Source: Adineta vaga
Taxonomy: Eukaryota; Animalia; Rotifera
Direction of reading: 5' to 3'
Length of the DNA: 64,000 bases
Assembly: GCA_021613535.1 (NCBI GenBank)
Contig: CP075494.1
Span: 4,154,001 to 4,218,000 of the forward strand
Under the pieces are notes generated by a model that was not told where the DNA came from, did no database searches, and worked only from the letters and a program-made list of their open reading frames with translations. A program made the position numbers and the translations under genes. Positions 3,590-35,785 of this stretch are shown one piece after another. Position 1 is the first letter of the stretch; each line of letters starts with the position of its first letter.

Positions 3590-5075
3590 TGTAGCCCTTT
3601 CAGGATGGGTGGTAGAGACGTGCATCAGAGTTATTTCGGAATCGACGTTGAGATCAACTAAATTTTTTGCCTATAGCACATTTTTAACATTAGAAATTTT
3701 TTGGGTTGAAACTTTTGTTCCCTGATGTTTTTGTACACAGAGGTATATTATGTATTGATGGTTGGAACTAACTGTCTCTGCGTTAAAGTATGCTCATTCT
3801 AGTGATACATACCTAACGTTACTTGCGTAATCAAGCTCTATTCTCCCTCTTTTCCGATCTGCATTAAACTATCGGACTGTATTATTCTGATTTAGTCTCT
3901 TTTAAATGTCATTTTCCCCCCATACACACGTATATGTCCCCGTTTTGGATCCGAGAAGTCGTAGGTCAACTACTGATAAACGATCATAACAACGATCTTT
4001 CAACAGATATCCATGATCGAATTGCAATGTGGGTTTATATATTTGAAATTGGTTTAGAGAAAATCATACGTTAGAAGTATATTCTTTCAACTTCAATGAA
4101 AGATAGAATCAATTAACTCTTGAAAATTTATTGTCCTTTTTTTGTTTCAGAAAAAGATTCCCATCCTGAAAAAGTTAAGAAAAAGATGAAGGCGTCTTTG
4201 GTCTCAATTCTGATTAAAGACGTTTTATAGCCTGAAAATTTCGCTTCTTAGAATTCTTGGAAAAACAGATTGGTAAGAAAGAGTAGACAAAATTGCATGT
4301 ACAATATAAGTTTCAAAGTGGATCCAAGATCTGTTGTGACATTGCAGAATAAGGACTTTCAGTGAACAAGTATAAGTTTGAAATCGGACTCTGTAACAAG
4401 GTATTATCAAATCCAAAAGAATAATGTCTCTTCAAACTAGTTTCTGATTTGGATAGAGCAAGAAAAAGTAGGCTATATAAAAGTCATTTAATTATTTAAA
4501 ATATAATATTTGTAAAGACTGCTAGGATCAAGAACTGTCTATTTCCTTTAAAAAGCCTGTAACAACTCAAATCAGTAGTCGTAATATTTTTCTTATTGCT
4601 CGGACAAAATTCAATAAAAGTATGGTATTCATGATCGGCGTGACGAGTTCTATGAAATTAAATACAAAACTTTGAAATTGAAGAAAAAAAAGTTTTTTTT
4701 TCGATTCCTGGAAATATTCAGGCAGAACAAGTTTGAAGTCAAATTTCAAAGTTTCGACCCAACAGAAAAGTCAGAAAGATATTCCTATAAACTTGCAATA
4801 GTCCTTGGTTTCAATCTCGTGAAATGCATGTTATCCGATACAAATTTTGATGCTGATCCCAAACATGATATGATTTTTCCGGGAAAACGAACTTTTCACG
4901 ACTAAACAATCTATAATTTGGACATATTTTTCCGTAGATATAAATAATATTTTAATTTTTTTGACAACCTTCCAATCTTTTAAAAACATAAATAATATAT
5001 TGCACTCTGACTTCAAAATTGTATTTGATTTCAATCAGGTGACGTGGTCGACCTGATCATACTCAAACCCGCAAT
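3590..5075. mobile_element. Probable degenerate non-autonomous DNA-transposon remnant(s)
   Basis: Non-coding stretch with MITE-like sequence texture and only spurious ORFs. Termini not resolved. Confidence 0.25.
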
Positions 5076-5099
5076 GATTATATTTAATCAAAATATTAT

Positions 5100-7197
5100 T
5101 CACAGCAATAAAGGAAAATAGAGATAATAGTCTTTGGAATGTACCATTGCCATTTTGCGATCAAAAATAATGTTTCAATTTGGCACAATTCATACGCGTT
5201 GCAATTCTGGTAAAATTTTCTGTTATACTTGCAAGATGACCGTATGAAATATAAATCTTGTTCAAACATGGTAAATATGCATTCGAATCGACTAGAAATT
5301 GTTCCACGTAGTCGATATGTACATTGCAATATTCAAGTTCGACCAGATGAGAAAATTCAATAATCGAAGGTTTATCTACATGTTTCTCTTTTTGTTCGTT
5401 GCCATTGGAAATAATCAGACGACTGAGTAACGGAAAAGAACGTGAAATTTGAGCAAAAAAGCTATGTTCAAATGGATGTAGCCAATCCTTTAGACGCAGG
5501 ACACGAATATTAATGAACATACCACCAGGAAAATTGTGTGTTATGGGACAGATACGTTCCAGTGGGAATGCAAGTGAATAAACATGACATCGAACTGAAG
5601 GATGAAATCCATAATCGATATAACAATCAACATCATATCCACTTTGCTTGAATCCATGTCGAATATCATCAGGTGTTGGTTTAGGATGTTCTTGATCAAT
5701 TCTGACACATTCATTAACAATATCGAAGTGAAATGTATGTAAACGTGGCATTTGACTGAGTATATAATTGTTCAAATAAGTACCATCAATGATAGAACCT
5801 TTTCCAGCAACACGAAGAGACAAAGTGAGTTGTTCCAAATGTGTCATTCGACGAAGGAGAGGTACCACTAGACTGTCAAATTCAGCTGTTCTATGATATG
5901 CATGTATGGAAAAACATTTGAGTTGAATTAAATTAGTCTATAAAAAACAGATGTTGTTATTGATTCAATAATAGATTGAATCGATATATCAAATTAAAAA
6001 AAACACGATTAATTTGAAGATATTCTTATACTCTTTCGACAAATGACGATCAGAGGTTTCGTTTTTATTTTACCAAATACCTCAAAAGCAGAGTGAACTA
6101 TTTTGATAGTTATCAGTACCATCTGGATCAGTTAGAATGGTTTCTCTCGACAGATATGCAACTAATTTCATAATGAATAAATCATGACTTAACAACAAAT
6201 CAAGAATGTGTAAGATTCTTTATGAATCTGCGTTCATCTAATCTTTCTATATTCTTAATAACTCTCTTTAGAGATAATTAATTCAACAGTTCTAGTCGAA
6301 AATGAAAAAAAAACATTCCTATCGGATCGAATACAGTTATTTACCATATTATCCATGATTTTCAATGAATGACGGATAATTCGTTGCGAACGTAATCTGA
6401 TCTGTACAGGATTATGAACATAAGTAAGAATGATAATTGATGTCTTTAATTGACTAAGACGACCGTCAAGTAAATAAATACAATCATCGATATTCTGCAT
6501 TTTAATGCGCAAATGAACAATACTCGACGAATAACATATTGGAGATGATAAACTAGTTAACAACGGTCCAGAAAACACATAAGTGTCACTAGTATCTATA
6601 TCCAAATATTTGAGATTTGTAAATAAGACAAAAATACGATTATAAGTGTCTGCGAATAGCTTTACATTTAATTGACCCAGAATATCAGAATCAATCGTTA
6701 AAACTATATCTGAAATTTGCTGCTTTAAAACCTGAATGAATGGAGTTTTTTCTAAAAACAGAGAATAAACAGAAAGGATTGTTTTACTTCTTTGACATCT
6801 ATGAATGAAATTAGATACCATTAAAGATTTGACAAGCCATACTCATTTCAAGATTAATCATAACAAGCTTGCGCAAACCAACATAGTTAGTAGAATGAAG
6901 GACACGTGGTAAGAAATATCCATGAAGAGTTAGAGATTCCACGTTACAGCGAATTCGAGGTAATATTTCCTTACAAAATCGATTCAGGATTGGATTGAAT
7001 TTCAAATCAATCATTCCATTTGGTTCGATTGTCATTAGGTCGACAAATCGGGTGAAACTTATATCACATGCCAGTCGATTGAGTTTCTCATTAACACCAA
7101 CCATAGAATATATAACATCGAAATTGTTGAGTTTTTTCAAAATATATAGCAAAATTTCGTTCGGTAGATCAACAATATTAACATTTGACTGATTCAT
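5100..7197 (-). pseudogene. F-box protein gene (bdelloid-expanded type), 3 exons, terminal frameshift
   Basis: N-terminal F-box (DLPNEILLYILKKL), exons ~7197-6818, ~6750-6345 and ~5936-5100. An apparent 2-nt deletion at ~5172 displaces the family-like C-terminus IIFDRKMAMVHSKDYYLYFPLLL*. Confidence 0.8.
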
Positions 7198-8049
7198 ATT
7201 CGTTCTGATTCATCATTCTTTCAACTGCTAAATATATATATAGCTGCGTTTCGTCGATATTCATGTATCACTTTTTCGACGTCTGCCAGAATCGGCATAA
7301 AGATATGTTAACGTTCGGTCAATCTGGTTCAATAATGGACAAGATTCATTTTGTTCGTTTACTCACATAAGATTAGAGGTTAAATAGATTGAAAAAAAAT
7401 AAAGTCGAATTAAGTAATGTGATTGGTGTTTTCATGTGACAACACCAATCACATTTCTCAATTTAGCTTTGTTTTTGATAGTCTGTTTAGAGTCTTACTC
7501 ACAATAAAAATTAAAAATGAATAATGAACCCTCGTGTGCATACCATTGATCACTGCAATTGAAATTGAAGAAGCGAAAAGTATCTTTCGGATTAGTTTTT
7601 GGTCTATTTCCCTTCTTTTCATTGAAATTTTAAACGACGGATGTCTGAGAACACTGTCGTCTGTATTTAGTTCCAGTGACGAATCTAGAGTTTTTATGAT
7701 GGAGAGGATCATACTGAAAAAAAAAATATAGTTTAAAGTCTTATTGGAGAAGTATCGGATACATAACGAAAAATAAACAATGAACTTATAACAAGTTTTG
7801 ATTTACTTTTAAAAATATTCGATTTTGAAAATATTCTTCTCTCATATTTGATCGTCGTGGTGATAGAATCAAGCCTGCATATGAGAATACTCGTTCTATA
7901 GGAGCTGATATATGAATGACTATGACTAATTTCATTGGTAATTATGAACAATATGCTTCAATAACTATCATAATAACATATGTGTATTGCAAATATTAAT
8001 ACAATGCTTTTTAGTGTAATGGTTTATGATGTTGTTCGTTTGCGTACAA

Positions 8050-8160
8050 ATGTACTGCAGTACCAGTACTGAGTGCAAATATACTCAAGTAATTGTACTT
8101 GAGTAAAAGTCCAAAGTACAACTTTGAAAGTACAAGTATGTTTACTCATACTTGCTTTCG
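8050..8160. repeat. Short palindromic TACTCAAGTA/TACTTGAGTA repeats, possible MITE subterminal remnant
   Basis: Hairpin tactcaagta-attg-tacttgagta near 8082-8105, among several AGTAC repeats. Confidence 0.35.
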
Positions 8161-9859
8161 ATCTCTGCACGTCTTATTCTCGCTATTTTTTAAATATGTT
8201 CTCCTGTTACTTGCTCCTGCTCTGTCTGTCTATTGATGGAAAGTGTTATTCTCTCTCTTTGGTCTTTTCAAATAGACGAAAGAATGTTTCGTCTCACCAA
8301 TATCAGTAACTTCAACGGGATACAGAAGAGAGAAAGAAAGGAATCAATATAAACGTGTTAGAATGCAATCGAAGGAGGAACAAAGAGAACATTTTTATCG
8401 TAGGAGAAAAAACAGCTTTTGAGAACGAAAATTTCAAAGTATAATATCTACTAAAAAACTTGCTTTCTTCATTTAAAAAGAAAATTTTATTATTAAGTTT
8501 AAAGAGAAAGATATGTACCCATTTCTGGCAATTAAGTGACTACTACTTGCACCAACTTTCCCGCTGCTAAATGGTTTTTCTTTTTAATATTTTTTTATTA
8601 AGCTTGATGTTGGGATATAATATGAATAAAACTAAATCTCGGACATTTTTTTTATGGAGAAAAATCAATACTTTTAATTGGAGAAAGAATATTCTCAACA
8701 AATACTGATCATCTTATTGATTACCTCAAATAAATACTATTTGTTTTCTTATCTCCATTTTACTTTTTCCGATTCTAATGTAATTTGTCTTTTAGTAAAG
8801 GCTGAGAGCAAAGAGCTTTTTCCATCCCCTTGCTCTAACAAAATGTTAATTAACAATAGCAATATTTCTAAAAAACGAATAATCATTCAGATGAATGATG
8901 GTTTTTTTTTCGTATGTCTATGTTACGTGTTTTATCGGTGGTGCGATGCATACTATCTTGAAAATTTCAAATTCTAAAAATATGTCTTTTTGTTAAATTG
9001 TATTTGCAAAAAAAGCGAGAACGTTAATTCTTTCATAATTTGATGTTTTGTGAAAACCTCAGGTTTTGTTCATTGAATAATTGACATTGAGTACGCTGTT
9101 ATCAAGCCAGTTAAGGTTAAACATTTCAAGATTACCTTTGTTACTAGGCAAACTATCAGACTATGATGAAATTTTGGTTATAAGAATAACAATTATCGAA
9201 CTACTGAGATCCTTTTTTCTTCGTTAAAACTTTCTCTCATATAAAGAAAATAATATTGAATAACTTCTCACTATTTTAAATGTAATAGATGACAAAAAAG
9301 TTCATGACAATAAATCGATCATCCTATTTATTGTAACAAAACGTTTTCGATAAAATTTCAGATCACCATAACGACTAAATTCAATGGATATTTAAGCACG
9401 GATTTGCTAGATGAACAATCATGTAGATTTTATTTTAGATTTTACATATACAACTCATTTTCGACAAAAGAATTAACTTAATCGTGTTATATTTATTTCT
9501 CCTATTATGATGAATTTTATTGTCATATATTTAAAGCACATAATCGTGTCTCGTTGTAATTTCAATTTGTGTTTCAAGGATTAGCTGTTGGTTGAGTACG
9601 CATTGATATTTATCGGTGAAAAACAAATTTCGATAAATAAATCTACAATATTTCTTAAAACGTCGACTTGAGTTGTCAATATTATCTTGCTAGCGATCAA
9701 TAACACTTGTCTTTGGTGAGTTATTTCCGTTCTTTTTTTCATTGAAATGAAAACACACGTGCTCAGGTAATTCGAGTAGGACGACGCTCCTTTATTATGA
9801 TTATAAATGATCGATCAAAACGTTAATCAATACATTATTTATTGTGTAGACGTCGTTCG

Positions 9860-19408: not shown

Positions 19409-20971
19409 ATGTCCGTCATTCGTGTGTTTCCAGAATCACATCTGAAAGATTCATCTGATCCTCATCATGTTCCATTATCTATATTGGATTCAACTGTCGG
19501 CCATTTTGCTCCTACCTGTGCTACATGGATATATAATCCACCAATAGATGGCTATGGAATATCAACACAACAACTCGTACTTGCCTTAGAGAAAAGTCTG
19601 AACGTATATCCTCATTGGGCTGGTCAGCTTCAATTCATGCCTTACAAACCAAATGAAGATCATACTCATCGTTTTGGACGTTTGAGCATTCTTTACGGTA
19701 CCAAGTCAGATCCAGGCGTCGAGGTAGTTATCATACATCGTCCAGAAACAATCTCATCTTTCGTACCTAGTGCAACGGAACGTGAAACAGGTCTTGGATG
19801 GTGGAATGCTGAAGAAGCACCTTTGATAGAACTAGTACCAAATTCTTCTTTCCTCGCGTTACATGATCTCATCCATTATGAAGGTTTACCAGCAATGTTG
19901 GTTCAACTCACAACCTTCGAATGCGGTAGTTTATCTATTTCAATAAAACTTGCACATCCATTGGCAGACGCTCAAACATTAATCGGTTTCGCGCATAACT
20001 GGGCAGCTATCACTCGCGCTTTAATTACAGGCAACTCGTTACCTTCATTAAATGTCGTTTTTGAGCCTCGACGGTTAGATCAAGCTGCAGCTGGCAACAT
20101 CGATGCATCCAATCCAAATCCTACATTGATTAAAATTGCTCGCGATCTTCCTTTACATCGCTACGACCGATGGGCTTCATCAGATGGATGTCCTTCGTTT
20201 ATGACAGAAGCCACCAAAGTTCCACTTGGCCTGGATATTAGTAATATAATACTTGAAAATCCGTTACCTTGGTCAGAATGGGATGTCAGTGCGCCAGTGT
20301 CTCATTATCTTATAAGTTTTACTGTTGATGAAGTAAAAGCGATGTGGGAAGAAGCTTCATTAAATTCAGACGTACAAATCAGTCGTCTTGATGCACTTCT
20401 GGCACATATTTGGATTCTTATTATTCGAGCACGAGAACTAGTATACGATCAACAACCCATCTATCTTAATGTAACACTTGGAGTTCGACCTCGACTATCT
20501 CCTCCTCTTCCCGAAAATTTTGTTGGTTCACCGATTATCCTTGCTAAAGTTTTCACTGTTGGTCTACAGCCTATCGGCAAAATAGCTCTATCCATCCGTT
20601 CTATTCTCTCTAAATTCAATTCAATGAATATAGGTGCCATGTTGCATGATTTAGCTTTTGAAATTAGTCCTCATCGAATATGGAATGCCTTCCTTGGTCT
20701 ACGAAATACTATTGTTACTTCTTGGTTGCGTTTGGAAACATATGAAATAGATTTTGGGATGGGTCTGCCGAGATTTGTGGATGCTTTTATGCCTAGTGTG
20801 GATGGTTGTGTGCATCTCATGGAGAACGGAAATACAAATGATGCGAAGAAAAAGAATTGGTATGACGAGACAGTGAGCGTGTCTTTACATCTTAGAACGA
20901 ACATAATGAACAAGTTACTTAATGATCCGGATCTTCGAAAATATAGGAAAAACTCTCATGAAGCAATATAA
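19409..20971 (+). CDS. BAHD/transferase-family CoA-dependent acyltransferase (fungal-like)
   Basis: Intact, intronless, 520 aa. HxxxD (HPLAD), DFGWG-like DFGMG and YPHWAGQL motifs. Confidence 0.9.
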   Translation: MSVIRVFPESHLKDSSDPHHVPLSILDSTVGHFAPTCATWIYNPPIDGYGISTQQLVLALEKSLNVYPHWAGQLQFMPYKPNEDHTHRFGRLSILYGTKSDPGVEVVIIHRPETISSFVPSATERETGLGWWNAEEAPLIELVPNSSFLALHDLIHYEGLPAMLVQLTTFECGSLSISIKLAHPLADAQTLIGFAHNWAAITRALITGNSLPSLNVVFEPRRLDQAAAGNIDASNPNPTLIKIARDLPLHRYDRWASSDGCPSFMTEATKVPLGLDISNIILENPLPWSEWDVSAPVSHYLISFTVDEVKAMWEEASLNSDVQISRLDALLAHIWILIIRARELVYDQQPIYLNVTLGVRPRLSPPLPENFVGSPIILAKVFTVGLQPIGKIALSIRSILSKFNSMNIGAMLHDLAFEISPHRIWNAFLGLRNTIVTSWLRLETYEIDFGMGLPRFVDAFMPSVDGCVHLMENGNTNDAKKKNWYDETVSVSLHLRTNIMNKLLNDPDLRKYRKNSHEAI

Positions 20972-21172
20972 CGAGTATCTTATTGATAGGTTGTCTTTGA
21001 TACAAGTTATTGTTTAAATAAATAATAAAAACGGGATATTTCGTAGCATAACGTAAAGTAAGTAGATGATGACAAAAGAAAATGATAAACGATCACAAAC
21101 AACAATAATAAAAGAAATAAAACTCCACACCCATTATATTATACAAGTATAAATATTGACTTTTGATTTCAT

Positions 21173-21958
21173 TCATACAAAAACGATATATAACTTTGGA
21201 AATATAGTTATCTGAATAAATAGAAGTGTTATGCAAATTGTATTTTTTCTAGCTTGATTTGTTTGTTGATTTGAACAATTCCATCCTTTCGGAGGAATGA
21301 AGATGGCTGGATCAAATTCTTCGACGACAACAGTATAATTTGTAAACCACAAATATTGATAGACATCGAAGAATGGTTGAGGTAATGTATGTTGATAAAT
21401 GAGACGTCCGTCAGCAGCATCTGTATCAGTAAACCAAGTGACAACATCAGTCGCACAATTCCATCGATAAGCTTTCGTTGTTTGATAGTAGAGTGTCGCA
21501 TTATATGAACATAATTCTGCAATCCAATTTTGTGAGAGTGTAGTAGGTTTTCCTGGATATGTAACACAGAATATTCCATTTTGTGTAACATTAGCATAGT
21601 ACTGATACATGTTGGAAGGAGCTGATGAAGCAAAAAGTGTATCATAGGGTGAAGGAAATGTTCCAGCAAAATAGAGATCATCAGCTCGAAATTTCTGATT
21701 GATCGAATCAATGATCTGATATAAAATACCAGAACCAGCTGGTAAATTACTTGTCATATTGATAAATTGAAAATGTGCAGTTGCTGTCCATCTTGGCGGA
21801 TATACAGGAGGATTAGGAGGTGTATCTTCTATATAAGGTACACTTGCCCGTCCGAATGACAAATCACGAATGAATCCATCCATGAGACAGTCGATTTTTC
21901 TCCATTTGAACATGAAGATGAACAAGAAAAAAATAATCTTTATGGATTGCAAATACAT
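21173..21958 (-). CDS. Secreted, possibly GPI-anchored, ependymin-related (EPDR/LolA-fold) protein
   Basis: Signal peptide, PPVYPPRW, DSINQKFRAD, C-terminal FDPAIFIPPKGWNC and a hydrophobic tail. Confidence 0.65.
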   Translation of the reverse strand: MYLQSIKIIFFLFIFMFKWRKIDCLMDGFIRDLSFGRASVPYIEDTPPNPPVYPPRWTATAHFQFINMTSNLPAGSGILYQIIDSINQKFRADDLYFAGTFPSPYDTLFASSAPSNMYQYYANVTQNGIFCVTYPGKPTTLSQNWIAELCSYNATLYYQTTKAYRWNCATDVVTWFTDTDAADGRLIYQHTLPQPFFDVYQYLWFTNYTVVVEEFDPAIFIPPKGWNCSNQQTNQARKNTICITLLFIQITIFPKLYIVFV

Positions 21959-22443: not shown

Positions 22444-24861
22444 TCAGTTCACACTAAAAAGAATTCATTAAAAATTTAGCATTCATCAAATGAATATGAT
22501 AAACAGTACCTATTGATAATCTTACTTTTAACGTCAATAATTTTATCAACGAAAGGTACCATCTTCGGATGTTCACCTATTCGTCCAAACAGATGTATAC
22601 CATCGCAATATCCCATATGAGTACACACCATTCGAGGACAGATCTTATCAATTTTGACGTCCCAACGAATCTTTTTTTCATCCCAATGACGTTCGCATTT
22701 TTCTCGTGCTGGACAACGTTTGCACAACTCTTTCATATGTTCAACATATTTCGCCACGCGTTTTTTCATACATTTCTTCTTTTGAATGACATGCTTAATA
22801 CAGCATTGACATTTGTTGTTATCTTCTGAACATTGATCTATAAAAATAAATAAATAAATAAAGATTTTTACAATATGTTAGCTGCTGATTAAGTCCTACA
22901 CCACTCACCAATTGTTACTGTTTTAGTATTCGTTTCGTTTCCATTATCTTCACAACGTGCAAAGAAGTCTTGAATGGATGCTGTACTAAAACTGATTGTT
23001 TCCATTTTTATACTATCACCTTGAACAATTTGTTGGCAAAGTTTTTGAAAAGGTCCTAACATTGGACATATTTCTTTGTTCATTATGTTGATGTAAGCCT
23101 GATCATAATCATCTAAATGATAAGCGGCATTTTGTTCGCAAAAACCCATTGTTTGACAAGTATTTTTCACATCAAATTCATCCATCAAGAAACGAATATC
23201 TGCTGTTACTCCTGCAACAAATTGTAAACATTGTGTGACGTTCGATTTTGTGCATAGACTAGGCAAGTAAGATGTAAGTCGATCGATCACTTTTCTAGCT
23301 GCATCTTTACGAGGTTGAAAACGTTGAACACAAGCAGTACATTTCTCTTCCATATTTGAAGAACAATGATGGTTTACTGCACAAAATTCATCTGCTTTCA
23401 TTGAATGTAGATAATTATTCATGGTATTAAATTGTTTGTTAAACATTTCTTGACAGTTTTCTTTCGATGAATGATGTCCGCAAGTATCCATCAATGTTTT
23501 GTAAACTGTTTCCTAAAATAATTTATGTTATACATTCTTTCTTATAGAAATACAAATGATATTTACTAAATTATTGACATAGAATTTCGTAGACACTTGA
23601 ATGGCACTTTTGCAACATCACATTGAGTTCTATTTGCATCGATTTTAATCGATTGCACTTCCTTTTTGAAATATTTCTCGATCCGTGTTGTATCATTTTG
23701 AAGCATAGCTATATAAGTTTTGGCATAACGACGACTATCGACCGATGCAGAAATATGAATACAAATGGTTTGTAATTGTTCAAATTCATTGCAAATATTT
23801 TTAGTGAAGTAAGTGTCTAATTGTACATCAAGCAATAATTCGAGTAATAATGATGGTGAATCGACAGTAAAATCAATCTTTGATTTCTCCAATACTCCAT
23901 TGACATCATTATTTTCAGCTGTTTTCTTACAATAGCCAAGATGTTTACAAACAGCATGTGGACAAATATTTCCAATTTTTTTCAAGACACGACGTTCCTT
24001 TTCTCGAATCCAGTAACGGCAAAGATGTGGTCGACGTGAATGTTTACACATATGCAAACGTTTTCGAGCGATGTGTTTTACAATGTGACGAAGACGCATT
24101 TTTCTTCTTTCAACGTGCATTCTGCAGCATTGACATTTATCTTTACTTTTACTTGAACACTATGTGGAAATGTACATACAATGCAATACAAAAGAATAAG
24201 TTATGTATCGTCTTACGTCAATTTTCTCGTCGTCATCATCATTATCATTATGGTCAAGATCTATTTCACTGTAGTCATCGATTTTCTGACAAATCTGAGA
24301 GATTCCTATGAAAAGACATTCGAGAGTACATCATAAGTAAAATTATACAAAACTTACGGTTCCATTTTTTACATGTTCATAGATTTTTGCACCATATTCC
24401 GTGACCATTTCATGACACTAAAAATCAGAACAATCAGCCATTATGTAAAGCTCTGCTTGAACAACTAACCTGTTCAATGAGTTTTTCATCTGCAAGTTTT
24501 TTACAATCTCCATCTAAATAAATGCTGATTTCATTTGCAGATTTTTTCTGATAAATATGCAAATCATATGTAGCTCGAACTATAACGTTGCATAACATTC
24601 GTTCTTTATCATTGATAGATCCGTCATCAATTCCTTCTTCTGATGAATCTTTAATCATTGAAAATAGAGTGTCAGAAAAGAAAACAATATTTATTAGACG
24701 AAAGTTTACCGAATGATGTTTTAGGTGGTGGAAAAACAAATGCCGTTGTTCCGACCATCATTGTAGCAAAAACTATAGAAAAAATGAGAAAAATTCTTTT
24801 TCTAAATTCAATCAAATTTCTACATACTCAATAGAAGACCGATAAACGCGATCTTCCCCAT
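22444..24861 (-). CDS. Prosaposin-like multi-saposin (SAPLIP) precursor, multi-exon
   Basis: Signal peptide (MGKIAFIGLL...) and repeated saposin B Cys patterns (CxxC...C...C...VCxxLGYC) across ORFs 24739, 24120, 23494 and 22769, joined by short GT-AG introns. Confidence 0.85.
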
Positions 24862-25109
24862 TTTAATACTTATCGAACGATAAAACTATGACTTTTACGA
24901 TCGTAAAATAATAAATCTAGAAAACGATTATATAAGTATGGACTCTCCGAAGAGAAAAAAGAATACTAAAATGAAGGTTTATTATACATTTGTATGCGGC
25001 GGACGAGAACGCGAAAAGTTACGGATGAAAACATCTAGATTTGATCTATTACAGTAACAGGTAAAACTAAAGAACATAATGTCGCAAGAGAGGAAAGCAA
25101 CATATTCAT

Positions 25110-25115
25110 CACGTG
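25110..25115. promoter_or_regulatory. E-box CACGTG (CLEAR-like) ~250 bp upstream of the saposin gene
   Basis: TCACGTGG upstream of the ATG at 24861. Lysosomal genes are MiT/TFE targets in other animals. Confidence 0.25.
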
Positions 25116-25761
25116 GTGTGAACAACATCGAATATTTTCTCTTCACAATGCGAAGAAAACGATGGAGAAAAAAAATAAGACGTCATTTTTTTACGTTTCC
25201 TCATAAAAATTAATTGCGTCGTTGTAATAAAGAGTAAAAATAAAAAATGCCGAAGAAGAATGAAAATTAATCAAAATATATAGTATTTGTTTTCTGCAAT
25301 AGAAAAATATCGAGTTCACAGTAAATGTGCCAGTTGTATGAAAAAATGCAGTCTCCTATTATACCACTTGAACTTTGAGAAACGAACACAATTCTTTCCA
25401 TCAATCATACAGAAGATATTTTCTAACTACTCTTTTTAAACTTCTGATTAAAAGGAAAGTGAATTACGAATATACAATCAGCATTATTCTAATATAAAAT
25501 TATACACTTAAACTCAACGAAGGTAAAGAATATTGTTGTCATGTTTAGATGTACTATATCGACGTCGACGACAGAAAGTAGAAAAGAAGAGGCGTATGAT
25601 TCAAACGTATTCTTTGATGTAAGAAATAAAATCATTTATGCATACATATTGATGGTTAAACTTCTCAATAGCATACTCAGAGAAGGAAAAAGACATACTT
25701 CTTATTTCAACGTATTTGACCTCTCGTTTTAGATCGTTTTCTATAAAGAGAAAACAAGTTC

Positions 25762-26802
25762 ATGGCAACAATTCGTGTTCTTCATTTAGTTGGATCTTCT
25801 TACAATGATTTCTATTACGAATTATCATGCAGAAATGCTCGATGTAACTTAAATATGATACCAAATTTACCATTATTTCAAGACAGTCAAATTGCATTGA
25901 TTACACTTGATGGTTACTGGCGATTTCCTCCGACACTCAAATTAGAAGATATTGATGCTTCGAAACCGATGCCTCTCTCCGAAGCCATACAATTTATGAC
26001 AACGGAAAAAATTGATCTCGTCATGCCACACATGTATTGTATTCCTGGGATGACTCACTATCGCGCACTATTTGATTTACTTAAAATTCCTTATATGGGT
26101 AATAGTTCTGATGTCATGGCCATAGCAGCTCACAAAGGCAGAACGAAAGCCATTGTTGCAGCAGCAGGAGTCAAAGTACCTTTTGGTGAACTACTACGTC
26201 GAGGTGATGTTCCAACTCTTCCACCTCCAGCGATTGTAAAGCCTGCATACGGAGATAATTCTCTAGGAATGTGCCTTGTTAAACAAACTGTGAGTATGAA
26301 ACTGCTTTAAAAACAGCTTTTGAACATGCAGACGAAGTTATCGTAGAGACATTCATTCAACCTGGTCGAGAAGTGCGTTCTGGCATCATTGTCAAAGATG
26401 GTCAGCTCGTTGCTTTACCCCTTGAAGAGTATGCGATAGATCAACATGAACGACCGATTCGAACTCATGCTGAGAAATTTCCAGAACTAGATGCTGATGG
26501 TAAATTCCAAGGCTGGCCAAAAGATAGTATTCAACGGTACTGGATCGTCGACAGTTAATGATCCGATCACAGGAAAAGTTCAAGAGATAGCGAAGAAGTG
26601 TCATATGGCTTTAGGCTGTCGTCATTATAGTGCGTTTGACTTCCGAATTGACCCGTCCGAAGAACCTTGGCTTCTAGAAGCTGGTTTGTATTGTTCGTTT
26701 GATGGTGGAGGTGGAATTCCTTATATGGCAAAAGCTGCTGGAATATCTTTGGATGAATTATCGACGATAATGATTAAAGAAACATTAAATATGAGTTTAT
26801 AA
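25762..26802 (+). pseudogene. mysD: MysD-type D-Ala-D-Ala-ligase-like ATP-grasp (mycosporine-glycine:amino acid ligase homolog), two frameshifts
   Basis: LHLVGS, WRFP, MYCIPGMTHYRALFDLLKIPYMGN, AAAGVKVP, DNSLG, LGCRHYSAFDFRIDP, LEAGLYCSF. A -1 shift at ~26290 and a +1 shift at ~26556. Intronless. Confidence 0.88.
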
Positions 26803-27168
26803 TATTGAACTGGTTCACGTTGTATTGTCTTGCTTCCTAATTAGAATAAACAATATAGAAACTCTTGATGATAAGTAAAATCGAATGCGTTAACTGTTGC
26901 ATATCAGTGAGAGAGAAAGAAATCAGCCACACTCACAAGACTGAAGATTATTATACTTCAGACACTTTTTCTTTCGATTTAGGATTAAATATCAAACTCA
27001 TCGTATTCAATAGAGAGATAAATCATCATAATTAACTTGCCATTTTAGGAGTTGTCCAAAGTACTGTTCATATTGCCCGTTTACAAAAAAAATGTAACAT
27101 ATTTCGTAAACACAATTTATTTTAGTTTATATAATAGTCTAATTAGTTTGGGAGCAAATGAGATATAG

Positions 27169-27227
27169 AGGGTGTTGGTGTGGGTGTGGATTAATAGTAT
27201 AGCCTTACGCATCCACACCAACACCCT
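27169..27227. repeat. Short inverted repeat built from telomere-like GGTGT(G/T) units
   Basis: agggtgttggtgtgggtgtg ... cgcatccacaccaacaccct form arms matching at 18/20 positions. Confidence 0.7.
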
Positions 27228-28156
27228 AGATTCGCCGTCTCATTCTGCATCGATTTATGTACTATTTAAATTGATTTTGCAATGGGTCGATTTACGGTCT
27301 TATACGTCTCGTCCTTTAATATAAATTAAAAATTGCTTTTTGTATTTTCTCATTCATTTTTATAAATTTATTTTTGATAGTTATGTCATTACAAAACAGC
27401 GATAGTAGTACTAATGTATAAGTGGGTAACGAAGTGAGTAAATACTTTTCTCTGGTACCTACTCGCGAATGAAAGTCACACGACATTAGAGATAAGCTTT
27501 GAAGTAATGCAGCTGTGCCATAGTTACAATTAATTGTTTTCTCATGTTATAAATTAAAAAAGGATTATGTGAGTAGCGAAGAACATAAGAAAAATATATA
27601 GTTAAAATAAATTGAAAATTTGAATCGGTTACAGGTAAGCTTCAAAAAAGATGATTTTATTCACATAAGAATGCTATGCGTTGCCAGTATGTAAGTATAT
27701 TCAAGATCTAGTTAATTGAGTAATACATCATTTGATATTTATCGCATTAATTCAATAGAAGTCAAAATGCTGCAATACCCATCCTGATATCCTAAAAGCC
27801 CGAACTCGCTAATTTGATAAAAGGTTTTCAAAACTAAGGAAGTTAAATCTATAGACCGTTCTTCAAATTCACGAATTCCATATTTATAGTAGATAGTTAT
27901 AGGTATTGTGACATCCTTCAATTCTACTGAATTAACGGAATAAATATTAACTGAAAGATACCTAATTCACGCTCTAAAGATGTATAAATGTCAGCAATTT
28001 TCTTTGTAGATTCTATAACTTTTATATAGATTAGGCTCAAATCTAATTCAAGTTCTTTCAAGAGAACTAGACTGAAGTCTTGAACGAAAAGTGTCTCGTA
28101 TATTACAATATCAGTCGTAATAGAACTACTAACATTTTTTTAGTGGTACTTTCGAA

Positions 28157-34485: not shown

Positions 34486-35785
34486 CATAGGGTGATCCAA
34501 AAGTGCCCGGAACACCTCCTTTTTTATTGATTAAAGAAACTTAACAAACAACTTATTTCATTAAATGTTCGAAGTACTCGCCCTTGTTAGTTACACAAAG
34601 TTTCATTCGTTCAATCCATTTGTTAAATGTCTTTCGAAACTCATTTTGTGGTATTGCCGGAATCTCCTTGGTTACAGCTTCTTGTAAGCTTTTAGAATCA
34701 GAATAACTACCAATTGATGTTTTAAATAACCAAAATCGCCAAAAGTCTGATGGTGCTAGATCAGGTGAATATGGTGGATGAGGCATCAACATGACTCCTT
34801 CTTGTTGAAGAAATATTTTAACATCTTTTGCTTGATGTGATCTTGCATTGTCATGATGCAATTTGATTGCGTGCAAACCAGATTTTGGTCTTTGTTGTCG
34901 GATATTGTCGAATAAAGGTTTTAGACAATTATCTTCGTAATAAGCACCAGATATCGAGTCACCCTTATCAACCATGTGAATAAGCTCTGGGCCTGTAGTT
35001 CGGAAGAAAACTACAAACATGTTTTTCGCATCGTATTGGCTTCGTCTGACCACCGTTGGTGGACTTGCACCTTCAGAACACCATGCCATATTTGATTGCT
35101 TCGATCCAATACTACGATGGTAGATCCACGTTTCATCATCGGTGACGATATCGCACAATCTCCATTGGCCGGATTCCAGTTTTGCAAGATTCTGTTCACA
35201 AATTTATATTCGTTGTTGCTTCGCTTTTTCTGACCGTTCATGTGGTATCCATCTTGCACATAACTTTTTCAATTTTAATTCATCATGAATAATCCTATTA
35301 ATGGTACCATATGACAAACCAGTCTCAAAGACCATATATCTAATACTAATGTGTGGATTTCCATTAATTAATGCACGAATAACTTCAATATGTTGATCAG
35401 TAGTTTCGGTTACTGGTCGACCAGTTCTTGAATCATCTTCTAATGAAGTTCTACCTTCTTTGAAACATTGCACCCATTCGGCTACTGTATTATAAGATAC
35501 GTAACCATCACCCCATGCATTACACAACTCCTTCTGAATTTGCTTTGCGTTAACACCAAGTTTGAACCTTGTAAAGATATAGAACCGAATATGTGTTTTA
35601 TCCATCTGAAAATACACCATTGAAAATAAAACTGGCTTTAAATTCAGTAGAAGTAAACAAAAATGTCTAATCACGTCAGTTAATAGGTCGATCCTTACAC
35701 TATTCAAATATGAAAAACAAAATCCTCTATTTCGTATAAAAGAGAAAATCGAGAGCAGTTCCGGGAACTTTTGGATCACCCTAAG
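34486..35785 (-). mobile_element. Mariner (DD34D) transposon, full length, transposase inactivated
   Basis: 28-bp TIRs CATAGGGTGATCCAAAAGTGCCCGGAAC with 2 mismatches, TA TSD. WIPHE, DETW, HHDNA and YSPDLAPSD motifs with D34D spacing. In-frame TAA at 35204. Confidence 0.95.

Follow-up and report, generated by a model that had tools for sequence, protein, structure and literature searches.

A gene of cyanobacterial type in a rotifer genome raises the question of whether an animal possesses its own MysD, the ligase that joins an amino acid to mycosporine-glycine to give a mycosporine-like amino acid (MAA), or whether a cell-wall ligase, a contaminant or a decaying copy has been mistaken for one. 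The gene lies in a 64-kb stretch of Adineta vaga DNA, called the window from here on (G000:C5:4154001-4218000, in a 100.8-Mb assembly of six contigs), where a Ddl-family member of the ATP-grasp superfamily (D-Ala-D-Ala-ligase branch) occupies exactly positions 25762-26802 on the forward strand. This mysD-type coding sequence is intronless, encodes 346 amino acids once two insertion-deletion differences (indels) in the reference are corrected, and belongs to a paralog lineage that we term 'b'. We favor the reading, with a probability of roughly 0.7, that the locus is an intact host MysD of Nostocales-type origin that would join an amino acid to mycosporine-glycine, its substrate-side loops having been altered.

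By its sequence relationships, the window protein is a MysD and not a cell-wall D-alanine--D-alanine ligase (Ddl). Searches for family, homology and structure were run on the three pieces into which the reference frame falls, or on intact relatives (P0001 and P0023). The joined 346-residue open reading frame (ORF), made of the window sequence plus the changes listed from sequencing contigs, was used in the alignment, tree and rate computations. A Ddl-like ATP-grasp domain of the expected length, about 340-350 residues, is confirmed for the window gene. The motifs by which an earlier note on this DNA had recognized a MysD (LHLVGS, CIPGMTHYRALFDLLKIPY, LGCRHYSAFDFRIDP, LEAGLYCSF, THAEKFPELDADGKFQGWPKD and SFDGGGGIPY) are all found in it; cyanobacterial MysD have the first four in conserved form, and the last two are unlike every one of the 44 cyanobacterial MysD that we compared. 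The window protein keeps 74 of the 81 columns that are invariant in those 44 proteins, intact rotifer paralogs keep 73-75, and a dead A. vaga copy on contig C3 keeps 51 of the 66 invariant residues that can be assessed. Among the seven changes in the window protein, four (A126G, L249F, K255D and V318G) recur in other rotifer copies, and three of these four fall in two substrate-side loops.

The company that the protein keeps points the same way. It is 62-65% identical to Nostocales proteins encoded in mysA-mysB-mysC-mysD clusters and 67% identical to an intact A. vaga paralog, also of 346 residues, that lies 143 kb away (P0001, L002:1492-2532). The relatives of this paralog fall into two groups: rotifer-type proteins at 64-77% identity, whose named members come from A. 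ricciae and A. steineri, and hundreds of Nostocales proteins at 63-69% identity that are annotated 'D-alanine--D-alanine ligase'. For three such cyanobacterial proteins we located the genomic loci, and each is encoded beside DHQ-synthase-like, Methyltransf_3 and ATP-grasp genes, which together with the Ddl-like gene itself make up a mysA-mysB-mysC-mysD cluster. The MysD of Nostoc sp. PA-18-2419 (locus L043) makes mainly porphyra-334 when expressed (PMC11983340).

An IQ-TREE phylogeny of 75 proteins, rooted on a cyanobacterial group 40-43% identical to MysD, places the window protein inside cyanobacterial MysD and apart from Ddl, in agreement with the identity that the earlier note had proposed. 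All rotifer-type sequences form a single clade (100/100), nested within Nostocales-type MysD that include L043 in the arrangement (Scytonema hyalinum, ((Nostoc sp. FACHB-892 group + Stigonema group), rotifers)), with support of 100/99 and 99/93. Within the rotifer clade, the window protein pairs with A. ricciae P0023 (100/98) and P0020 joins next (100/97), while two further lineages stand separately: lineage a, comprising P0001 and A. ricciae P0004, and lineage c, comprising the dead C3 copy and A. steineri P0024. Read as a gene history, this topology shows that one mysD passed from a Nostocales-type cyanobacterium to an ancestor of the rotifers sampled here and later duplicated, within rotifers, into at least three paralog lineages. 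Every rotifer copy goes back to the same single transfer, out of a defined subgroup of cyanobacteria. A first tree, rooted on true Ddl, made the rotifers look paraphyletic; its branches exceeded six changes per column, and its rooting was therefore rejected as unreliable.

The nearest bacterial sister group in the tree includes the uncharacterized MysD of the FACHB-892/P0021 subgroup, which gives the highest bacterial identity (~65-69%) and shares with the window protein both a KFP motif and a Tyr at the second of two specificity positions (pair L-Y). It differs in lacking the extra loop residue, the aromatic residue at position 1 and the Gly-rich C-terminal loop that are described below, and in being bacterial and clustered. 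On metagenomic cyanobacterial contigs that encode it (L029/L030, P0021), the gene order is unusual, with mysA-mysB-mysD followed by an unannotated 459-residue gene and a 442-residue ATP-grasp gene.

Specificity loops and predicted function

Product choice in MysD has been narrowed to two omega-loop residues, L249 and A257 of Np.MysD, with an X-A pair leading mostly to shinorine and an X-S pair mostly to porphyra-334; the characterized pairs are L-A, C-A and Y-A for shinorine and F-S, Y-S, A-S and M-S for porphyra-334 (PMC11983340). As the anchor of the omega-loop alignment we used the MysD of Nostoc sp. PA-18-2419, a Y-S enzyme. By this alignment, the omega loop of the window gene (THAEKFPELDADGKFQGWPKDSIQRYW) is encoded at 26463-26543 (+). 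Specificity position 1 (26514-26516, +) is probably Trp, or the preceding Gly under an alternative gap placement that would give the pair G-Y; position 2 (26538-26540, +), immediately before an invariant Trp, is unambiguously Tyr. The resulting W-Y pair, found in the window protein and its A. ricciae ortholog, falls outside the characterized X-A and X-S types. Among the 44 cyanobacterial MysD the pair is mostly F-S, L-A, C-A or Y-S, with others including M-S, A-S, L-S, L-Y, L-G and S-G. The remaining rotifer copies have Y-Y (P0020), Y-H (lineage a) and W-H (lineage c).

Two further features are common to all rotifer copies: one extra residue in the omega loop, with KFPE for KLKQ/KLQQ, and a Gly-rich C-terminal substrate-side loop of the form SF(D/G)xG(G/S)GI for SFAPKSVI. 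In the window protein this second loop reads SFDGGGGIPY (26695-26724, +) in place of cyanobacterial SFAPKSVIS, and it carries V318G, which is fixed in rotifers at a position where Val is invariant in the 44 cyanobacterial MysD. This loop would correspond to the segment that binds the carboxylate of the second substrate, by homology to Ddl and VanA (a PDB alignment, together with structural work on DdlB). The idea of a remodeled specificity region, also put forward in the earlier note, thus holds for both loops, which diverge from all 44 cyanobacterial MysD and are conserved across the rotifer clade. Because this divergence is clade-wide and conserved, it appears to reflect function rather than decay. 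The amino acid that the window enzyme adds probably differs both from the Ser or Thr of characterized enzymes and from the one used by its paralogs. What is new here is a predicted animal MysD with uncharacterized specificity determinants, one of several paralogs, and the diverged rotifer copies offer natural variation with which the residue-to-product rules used in MysD engineering could be extended.

Ligase activity on mycosporine-glycine is predicted from family membership. As in cyanobacterial MysD, ATP would activate C1 of mycosporine-glycine as a phosphate intermediate, onto which an amino acid would condense to give a disubstituted MAA. The substrate, mycosporine-glycine, would be supplied through genes of the animal itself on contig C4 (mysA, an O-methyltransferase and mysC), and the remodeled loops, facing the incoming amino acid, would change which amino acid is used.

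The main alternative is a MysD descendant that has been neofunctionalized, joining to mycosporine-glycine some other amine in place of an amino acid, or using a different carboxylate or enone scaffold. Such an enzyme could be expected to show what we see in all rotifer copies, namely remodeling of both substrate-side loops and a Tyr or His at position 2 where characterized enzymes have a product-correlated Ala or Ser. However, the nearest cyanobacterial sisters (P0021, L040 and L041) already have KFP and the position-2 Tyr, and they have them inside mys clusters, so part of the apparent remodeling would have been inherited from the donor lineage. The window copy is unlinked from other mys genes and has a BAHD-type transferase ORF 5 kb upstream, a setting in which another role could be imagined; yet the remaining active-site scaffold is conserved, and mysA, mysB and mysC are kept in the same genome. 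We consider a change of substrate class unlikely, though it deserves the most serious attention among the alternatives, and we continue to favor an amino acid ligase of altered specificity.

Reading frame, alleles and transcription

A predicted enzyme is of interest to the animal only if the gene is intact, and in the reference its frame is broken in three. The first piece (25762-26310) runs for 182 residues to a TAA stop, the second (about 26289-26558) is in a second frame, and the third (26491-26802) regains the first frame, the net effect of the two indels being that the original frame is restored. There are no stops elsewhere. The earlier note took the gene to be broken and repaired it, and we find that the repair agrees with real contigs (one base more at 26290/26291 and one fewer at 26553/26554) and that the gene is probably not broken, since every DNA and RNA contig that covers it is intact.

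These contigs come from four public runs, aligned to 24800-27800, of which three, from three studies, cover the gene: X5, a DNA run with two haplotype contigs, and X11 and X17, which are RNA-like. At the first frameshift (26290-26291, +) the reference is missing one base. The base is present in both X5 contigs (14.3 and 10.2 of a depth of 24.5), in X11 and in X17, and the contig codon is GCA or GCT (Ala) or GTA (Val). At the second (26553-26554, +) the reference has one extra base, which is dropped in X5 (16.6 and 16.1 of 32.7), X11 and X17, giving GTT (Val) or ATT (Ile). None of the four contig alleles from these three runs supports the reference reading at either indel. Applying the contig-based changes yields a stop-free ORF of 1041 nt and 346 residues, in two alleles that differ at four residues; besides the indels, the contigs carry 5-6 substitutions relative to the reference. 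The 27-nt GT..AG stretch at 26290-26316 might be taken for an intron, a reading that we reject because its removal would delete conserved residues and because the RNA contigs retain it.

Both indels coincide with positions of single-nucleotide polymorphisms (SNPs; alleles C/T and G/A), and the reference 'AGTT' at the second looks like a fusion of the A and G alleles. This coincidence with heterozygous sites makes assembly artefacts, in the form of consensus errors, the most likely source of the two breaks; at worst, they represent one null allele. The competing account accepts the reference as correct, such that this copy, or the haplotype that the reference represents, is a recent pseudogene and only another allele or a paralog is functional. 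A chromosome-level reference does contain both frameshifts, and the same genome holds a clearly dead mysD copy on C3. The 5-6 further substitutions also mean that the contigs may represent another haplotype, but neither indel is found in any contig allele of three independent studies' runs, both fall exactly where consensus errors typically arise, and stops are absent apart from the two indels. The retention of 74 of 81 invariant residues, together with a lineage ratio of nonsynonymous to synonymous substitution rates (dN/dS) of 0.12, also sits poorly with decay. We regard a pseudogene here as quite improbable. Counts of foreign genes in the A. vaga genome are affected by this, as an apparent pseudogene is most likely an assembly artefact.

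That the gene is transcribed is apparent from the RNA contigs. One X17 contig joins 24772 to 24828 and thereby skips a 55-nt GT..AG spliceosomal intron of the neighboring upstream gene (24773-24827 on the reverse strand, GTATGT...TAG), which identifies X17 as RNA. The X11 contig, 1196 nt long and composed of 25735-26872 plus 27179-27228, is transcript-like, being gene-sized with short untranslated ends, whereas the X5 DNA contigs span both flanks continuously. From the start of the X11 contig at 25735, a probable 5' untranslated region (UTR) occupies 25735-25761 (+). The 3' UTR extends over 26803-26872 (+), with an AATAAA at 26845-26850, and the RNA contigs stop or branch at 26872-26874 (the X17 contig ends at 26874 and the X11 piece at 26872). 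We read the window gene as intact and transcribed; whichever haplotype the reference represents, there is an allele that is both intact and expressed. An intact expressed copy was sought and was found at the window locus itself, in RNA and DNA contigs alike, and a second intact paralog lies 143 kb off.

The 306-bp skip that follows 26872 in the X11 contig was also considered as an intron and ruled out, because one DNA contig shows the same skip. It corresponds to an indel allele at 26873-27178, where the reference haplotype has 306 bp and the X11 contig, like one of the X5 DNA contigs, has 8 letters. Beside it lie an inverted repeat (27172-27240) and a high-copy repeat (27228-27306, with a depth of 122 in the fourth run, X1).

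Cell-wall ligases and host integration

If the gene were an ordinary Ddl of bacterial origin, acting in D-amino-acid metabolism, its top family matches would be Ddl models, as they are, and its homologues would often carry the source name 'D-alanine--D-alanine ligase', as many do. The size of the matches speaks against this. The reference pieces match Pfam PF07478 and the NCBIfam Ddl models weakly, far under the curated cut-offs: on PF07478, the second and third pieces score 18.7 and 25.8 bits and the intact paralog 78, and on the NCBIfam models, with cut-offs of 243-310, the pieces reach 15-47 bits and the paralog 92-99, so that the canonical Ddl threshold is missed. On TIGR01205 (cut-off 245.65), true Nostoc Ddl reach 372-382 bits, MysD from the same Nostoc genomes 86-97 and the rotifer paralog 90.6, and a genome search gives the window gene 27.9. 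Compared pairwise with the rotifer paralog, Nostoc MysD reach 478-505 bits, and the true Ddl encoded in those genomes reach 25-30 bits, in line with the grouping with MysD in the tree. As for the name, homologues that bear it reside in mys clusters. The earlier note's suspicion was sound on this point: the mys-cluster Nostocales homologues are called 'D-alanine--D-alanine ligase' by their sources, and MysD enzymes go unrecognized under such labels in the genomes of animals and cyanobacteria. A cell-wall ligase is thus highly improbable. The closest solved structures in the PDB are those of Ddl and VanA, none of which scores above 84 bits, and the PDB search returned no solved MysD structure.

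Other Ddl-family sequences occur in both kinds of genome. An A. vaga frame of 365 residues (L032, G000:C3:13762305-13763324, reverse strand) is nearer to canonical Ddl, scoring 192 bits on TIGR01205, which is below the cut-off; it has a very long branch and an odd composition and is unrelated to the MysD clade. Another Ddl-like fragment lies at C5:2488435-2489146. Among the loci L125-L127 and L157-L164, Nostocales genomes contribute a third Ddl-family class, with 117-124 bits on TIGR01205, and other cyanobacteria contribute a MysD-like group that is 40-43% identical to MysD and has a different omega loop.

The gene's setting is that of a host gene. Gene order at the A. ricciae P0023 locus follows that of the window: the genes at 3748-4503 and 4880-7050 there correspond to 21163-21860 and 22581-24631, and the intact MysD at 8001-9041 is the syntenic ortholog of 25762-26802. 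GC content at third codon positions (GC3) is 0.27 in the window gene compared with 0.38-0.42 in two Nostoc mysD, in a window with 32% GC overall. The dN/dS ratio is 0.12 against the A. ricciae ortholog, where dS (~1.25) is near saturation, and 0.18 against P0020, values which indicate that the window gene is under purifying selection. Taken together, dN/dS, collinearity, GC3 and the retained invariant residues rule out both contamination and a long-standing pseudogene. Cyanobacterial contamination of the assembly, to which the lack of introns and the 62-69% identity to Nostocales proteins might point, is scarcely tenable for a gene that lies inside a 16.9-Mb chromosome-scale contig, is flanked by host genes collinear with A. 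ricciae, has a neighbor with a 55-nt spliceosomal intron, shows host-like GC3, is at most ~65-69% identical to any bacterial protein and belongs to a clade formed by the rotifer copies.

Two other features of the window deserve mention. The BAHD-type acyltransferase about 5 kb upstream of mysD is an intronless ORF of 520 residues (19409-20971, +) that matches Pfam PF02458 'Transferase family' at 85.7 bits, and it looks like another foreign-type gene. At 34553-35779 (reverse strand), two adjoining ORFs with Mos1/mariner-type transposase domains (HTH_48, HTH_32, DDE_3 and Transposase_1) make up a broken mariner element.

Other mys genes and known counterparts

Searches of the 64-kb window, at relaxed thresholds included, found no mysA, mysB or mysC and no relics of them, which bears out what the earlier note had seen. 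Elsewhere in the genome they are present. Contig C4 (L021) carries a mysA in two exons, 55-67% identical to the Nostoc protein and 56% over residues 1-403/409 of Nostoc MysA, an adjoining O-methyltransferase that is 29-33% identical to MysB, and a mysC in two exons that is 46% identical to a Nostoc protein. Contig C5 carries a mysC-like gene of 453 residues head-to-head with paralog a, and C3 carries a mysD-mysC pair that has decayed, as well as a mysC that stands alone. Thus, mysA, mysB and mysC co-occur with mysD in the same genome, so that mycosporine-glycine could plausibly be made by the animal itself, a source more likely than the diet. The earlier note had left the source of MAAs as dietary or endogenous; the second option gains from the genome search and the first becomes less likely.

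The mys-type genes on C5 and C3 are spread over about 100-150 kb each. The C5 region (G000:C5, 4.18-4.32 Mb) contains the solo mysD of lineage b and the mysC/mysD a pair, and the C3 region (G000:C3, 13.62-13.76 Mb) contains the dead mysD-mysC pair, the solo mysC and the Ddl-like ORF. This scatter suggests ohnologous regions with differential loss. There is also a broken-looking mysC on C1.

Several points weigh against the favored reading of an intact, amino acid-joining host MysD. Substrate and product are predicted from homology alone, and the specificity residues are unlike any characterized pattern, such that the enzyme may not take mycosporine-glycine and an amino acid. The copy is solitary, not physically clustered with mysABC, with 141 kb between it and the nearest other mys gene, although one would not expect bacterial-type clustering to survive in the genome of an animal. 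The roughly 20 'rotifer-type' proteins were so labeled from the tree and their shared loops, and those named belong to A. vaga, A. ricciae and A. steineri only. With regard to expression and integrity, the DNA run X1, the best DNA match by shared words, has no contig over the gene, the RNA label of X11 is an automatic guess, direct splice evidence comes from X17 only, the runs were examined as assembled contigs, which drop rare variants, and X5 may be another strain.

A broader proposal follows the same lines, and we make it tentatively, as something possible rather than probable. Bdelloids might make their own MAAs through a captured Nostocales-type pathway, with the three paralog lineages, whose specificity pairs and Gly-rich loop fall outside all characterized patterns, leading to MAA structures that the donor did not make and the product of the window paralog being distinct. 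If this is true, there would be novel MAA structures possibly tied to tolerance of ultraviolet light, desiccation or radiation. In the full texts that we searched, mys genes in rotifers are unreported and MAAs receive only ecological mentions; this search left most subscription journals uncovered and is not proof of absence. A paper on the A. vaga stress transcriptome contains no Ddl, ATP-grasp or sunscreen terms.

Set beside known systems, the window protein is closest in kind to cyanobacterial MysD such as those of Nostoc punctiforme (NpF5597) and Nostoc sp. PA-18-2419, with which it shares a length of ~345 residues and a Ddl-type ATP-grasp domain. It differs in that the bacterial genes are clustered and the rotifer gene is solitary at its locus and in an animal, with host-adapted codon usage and triplication into paralog lineages. 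Canonical Ddl enzymes (DdlB and VanA; PDB 2DLN, 1E4E and 4FU0) belong to the same fold family and likewise use ATP-grasp chemistry, by way of an acyl- or enol-phosphate intermediate. They are remote from rotifer MysD, at 25-38 bits pairwise, which itself falls under every curated Ddl cut-off, and their substrates differ.

Animals are generally thought to obtain MAAs from food or symbionts. Cnidarians, with a four-gene MAA pathway, are the one known exception; gadusol is made by vertebrates (EEVS/MT-Ox). A complete bdelloid mys pathway, if host-integrated, transcribed and selectively maintained, would add a third sunscreen-making animal lineage and would be a clear case of a multi-step pathway delivered by horizontal transfer. 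The cnidarian and vertebrate pathways, as generally known, are likewise animal-encoded routes to sunscreens, partly built on genes of microbial origin. The rotifer case differs from them in its lineage (Bdelloidea), in an apparently separate acquisition from a Nostocales-type cyanobacterium, and in a last step that would be carried out by a MysD-type ligase multiplied into diverged paralogs.

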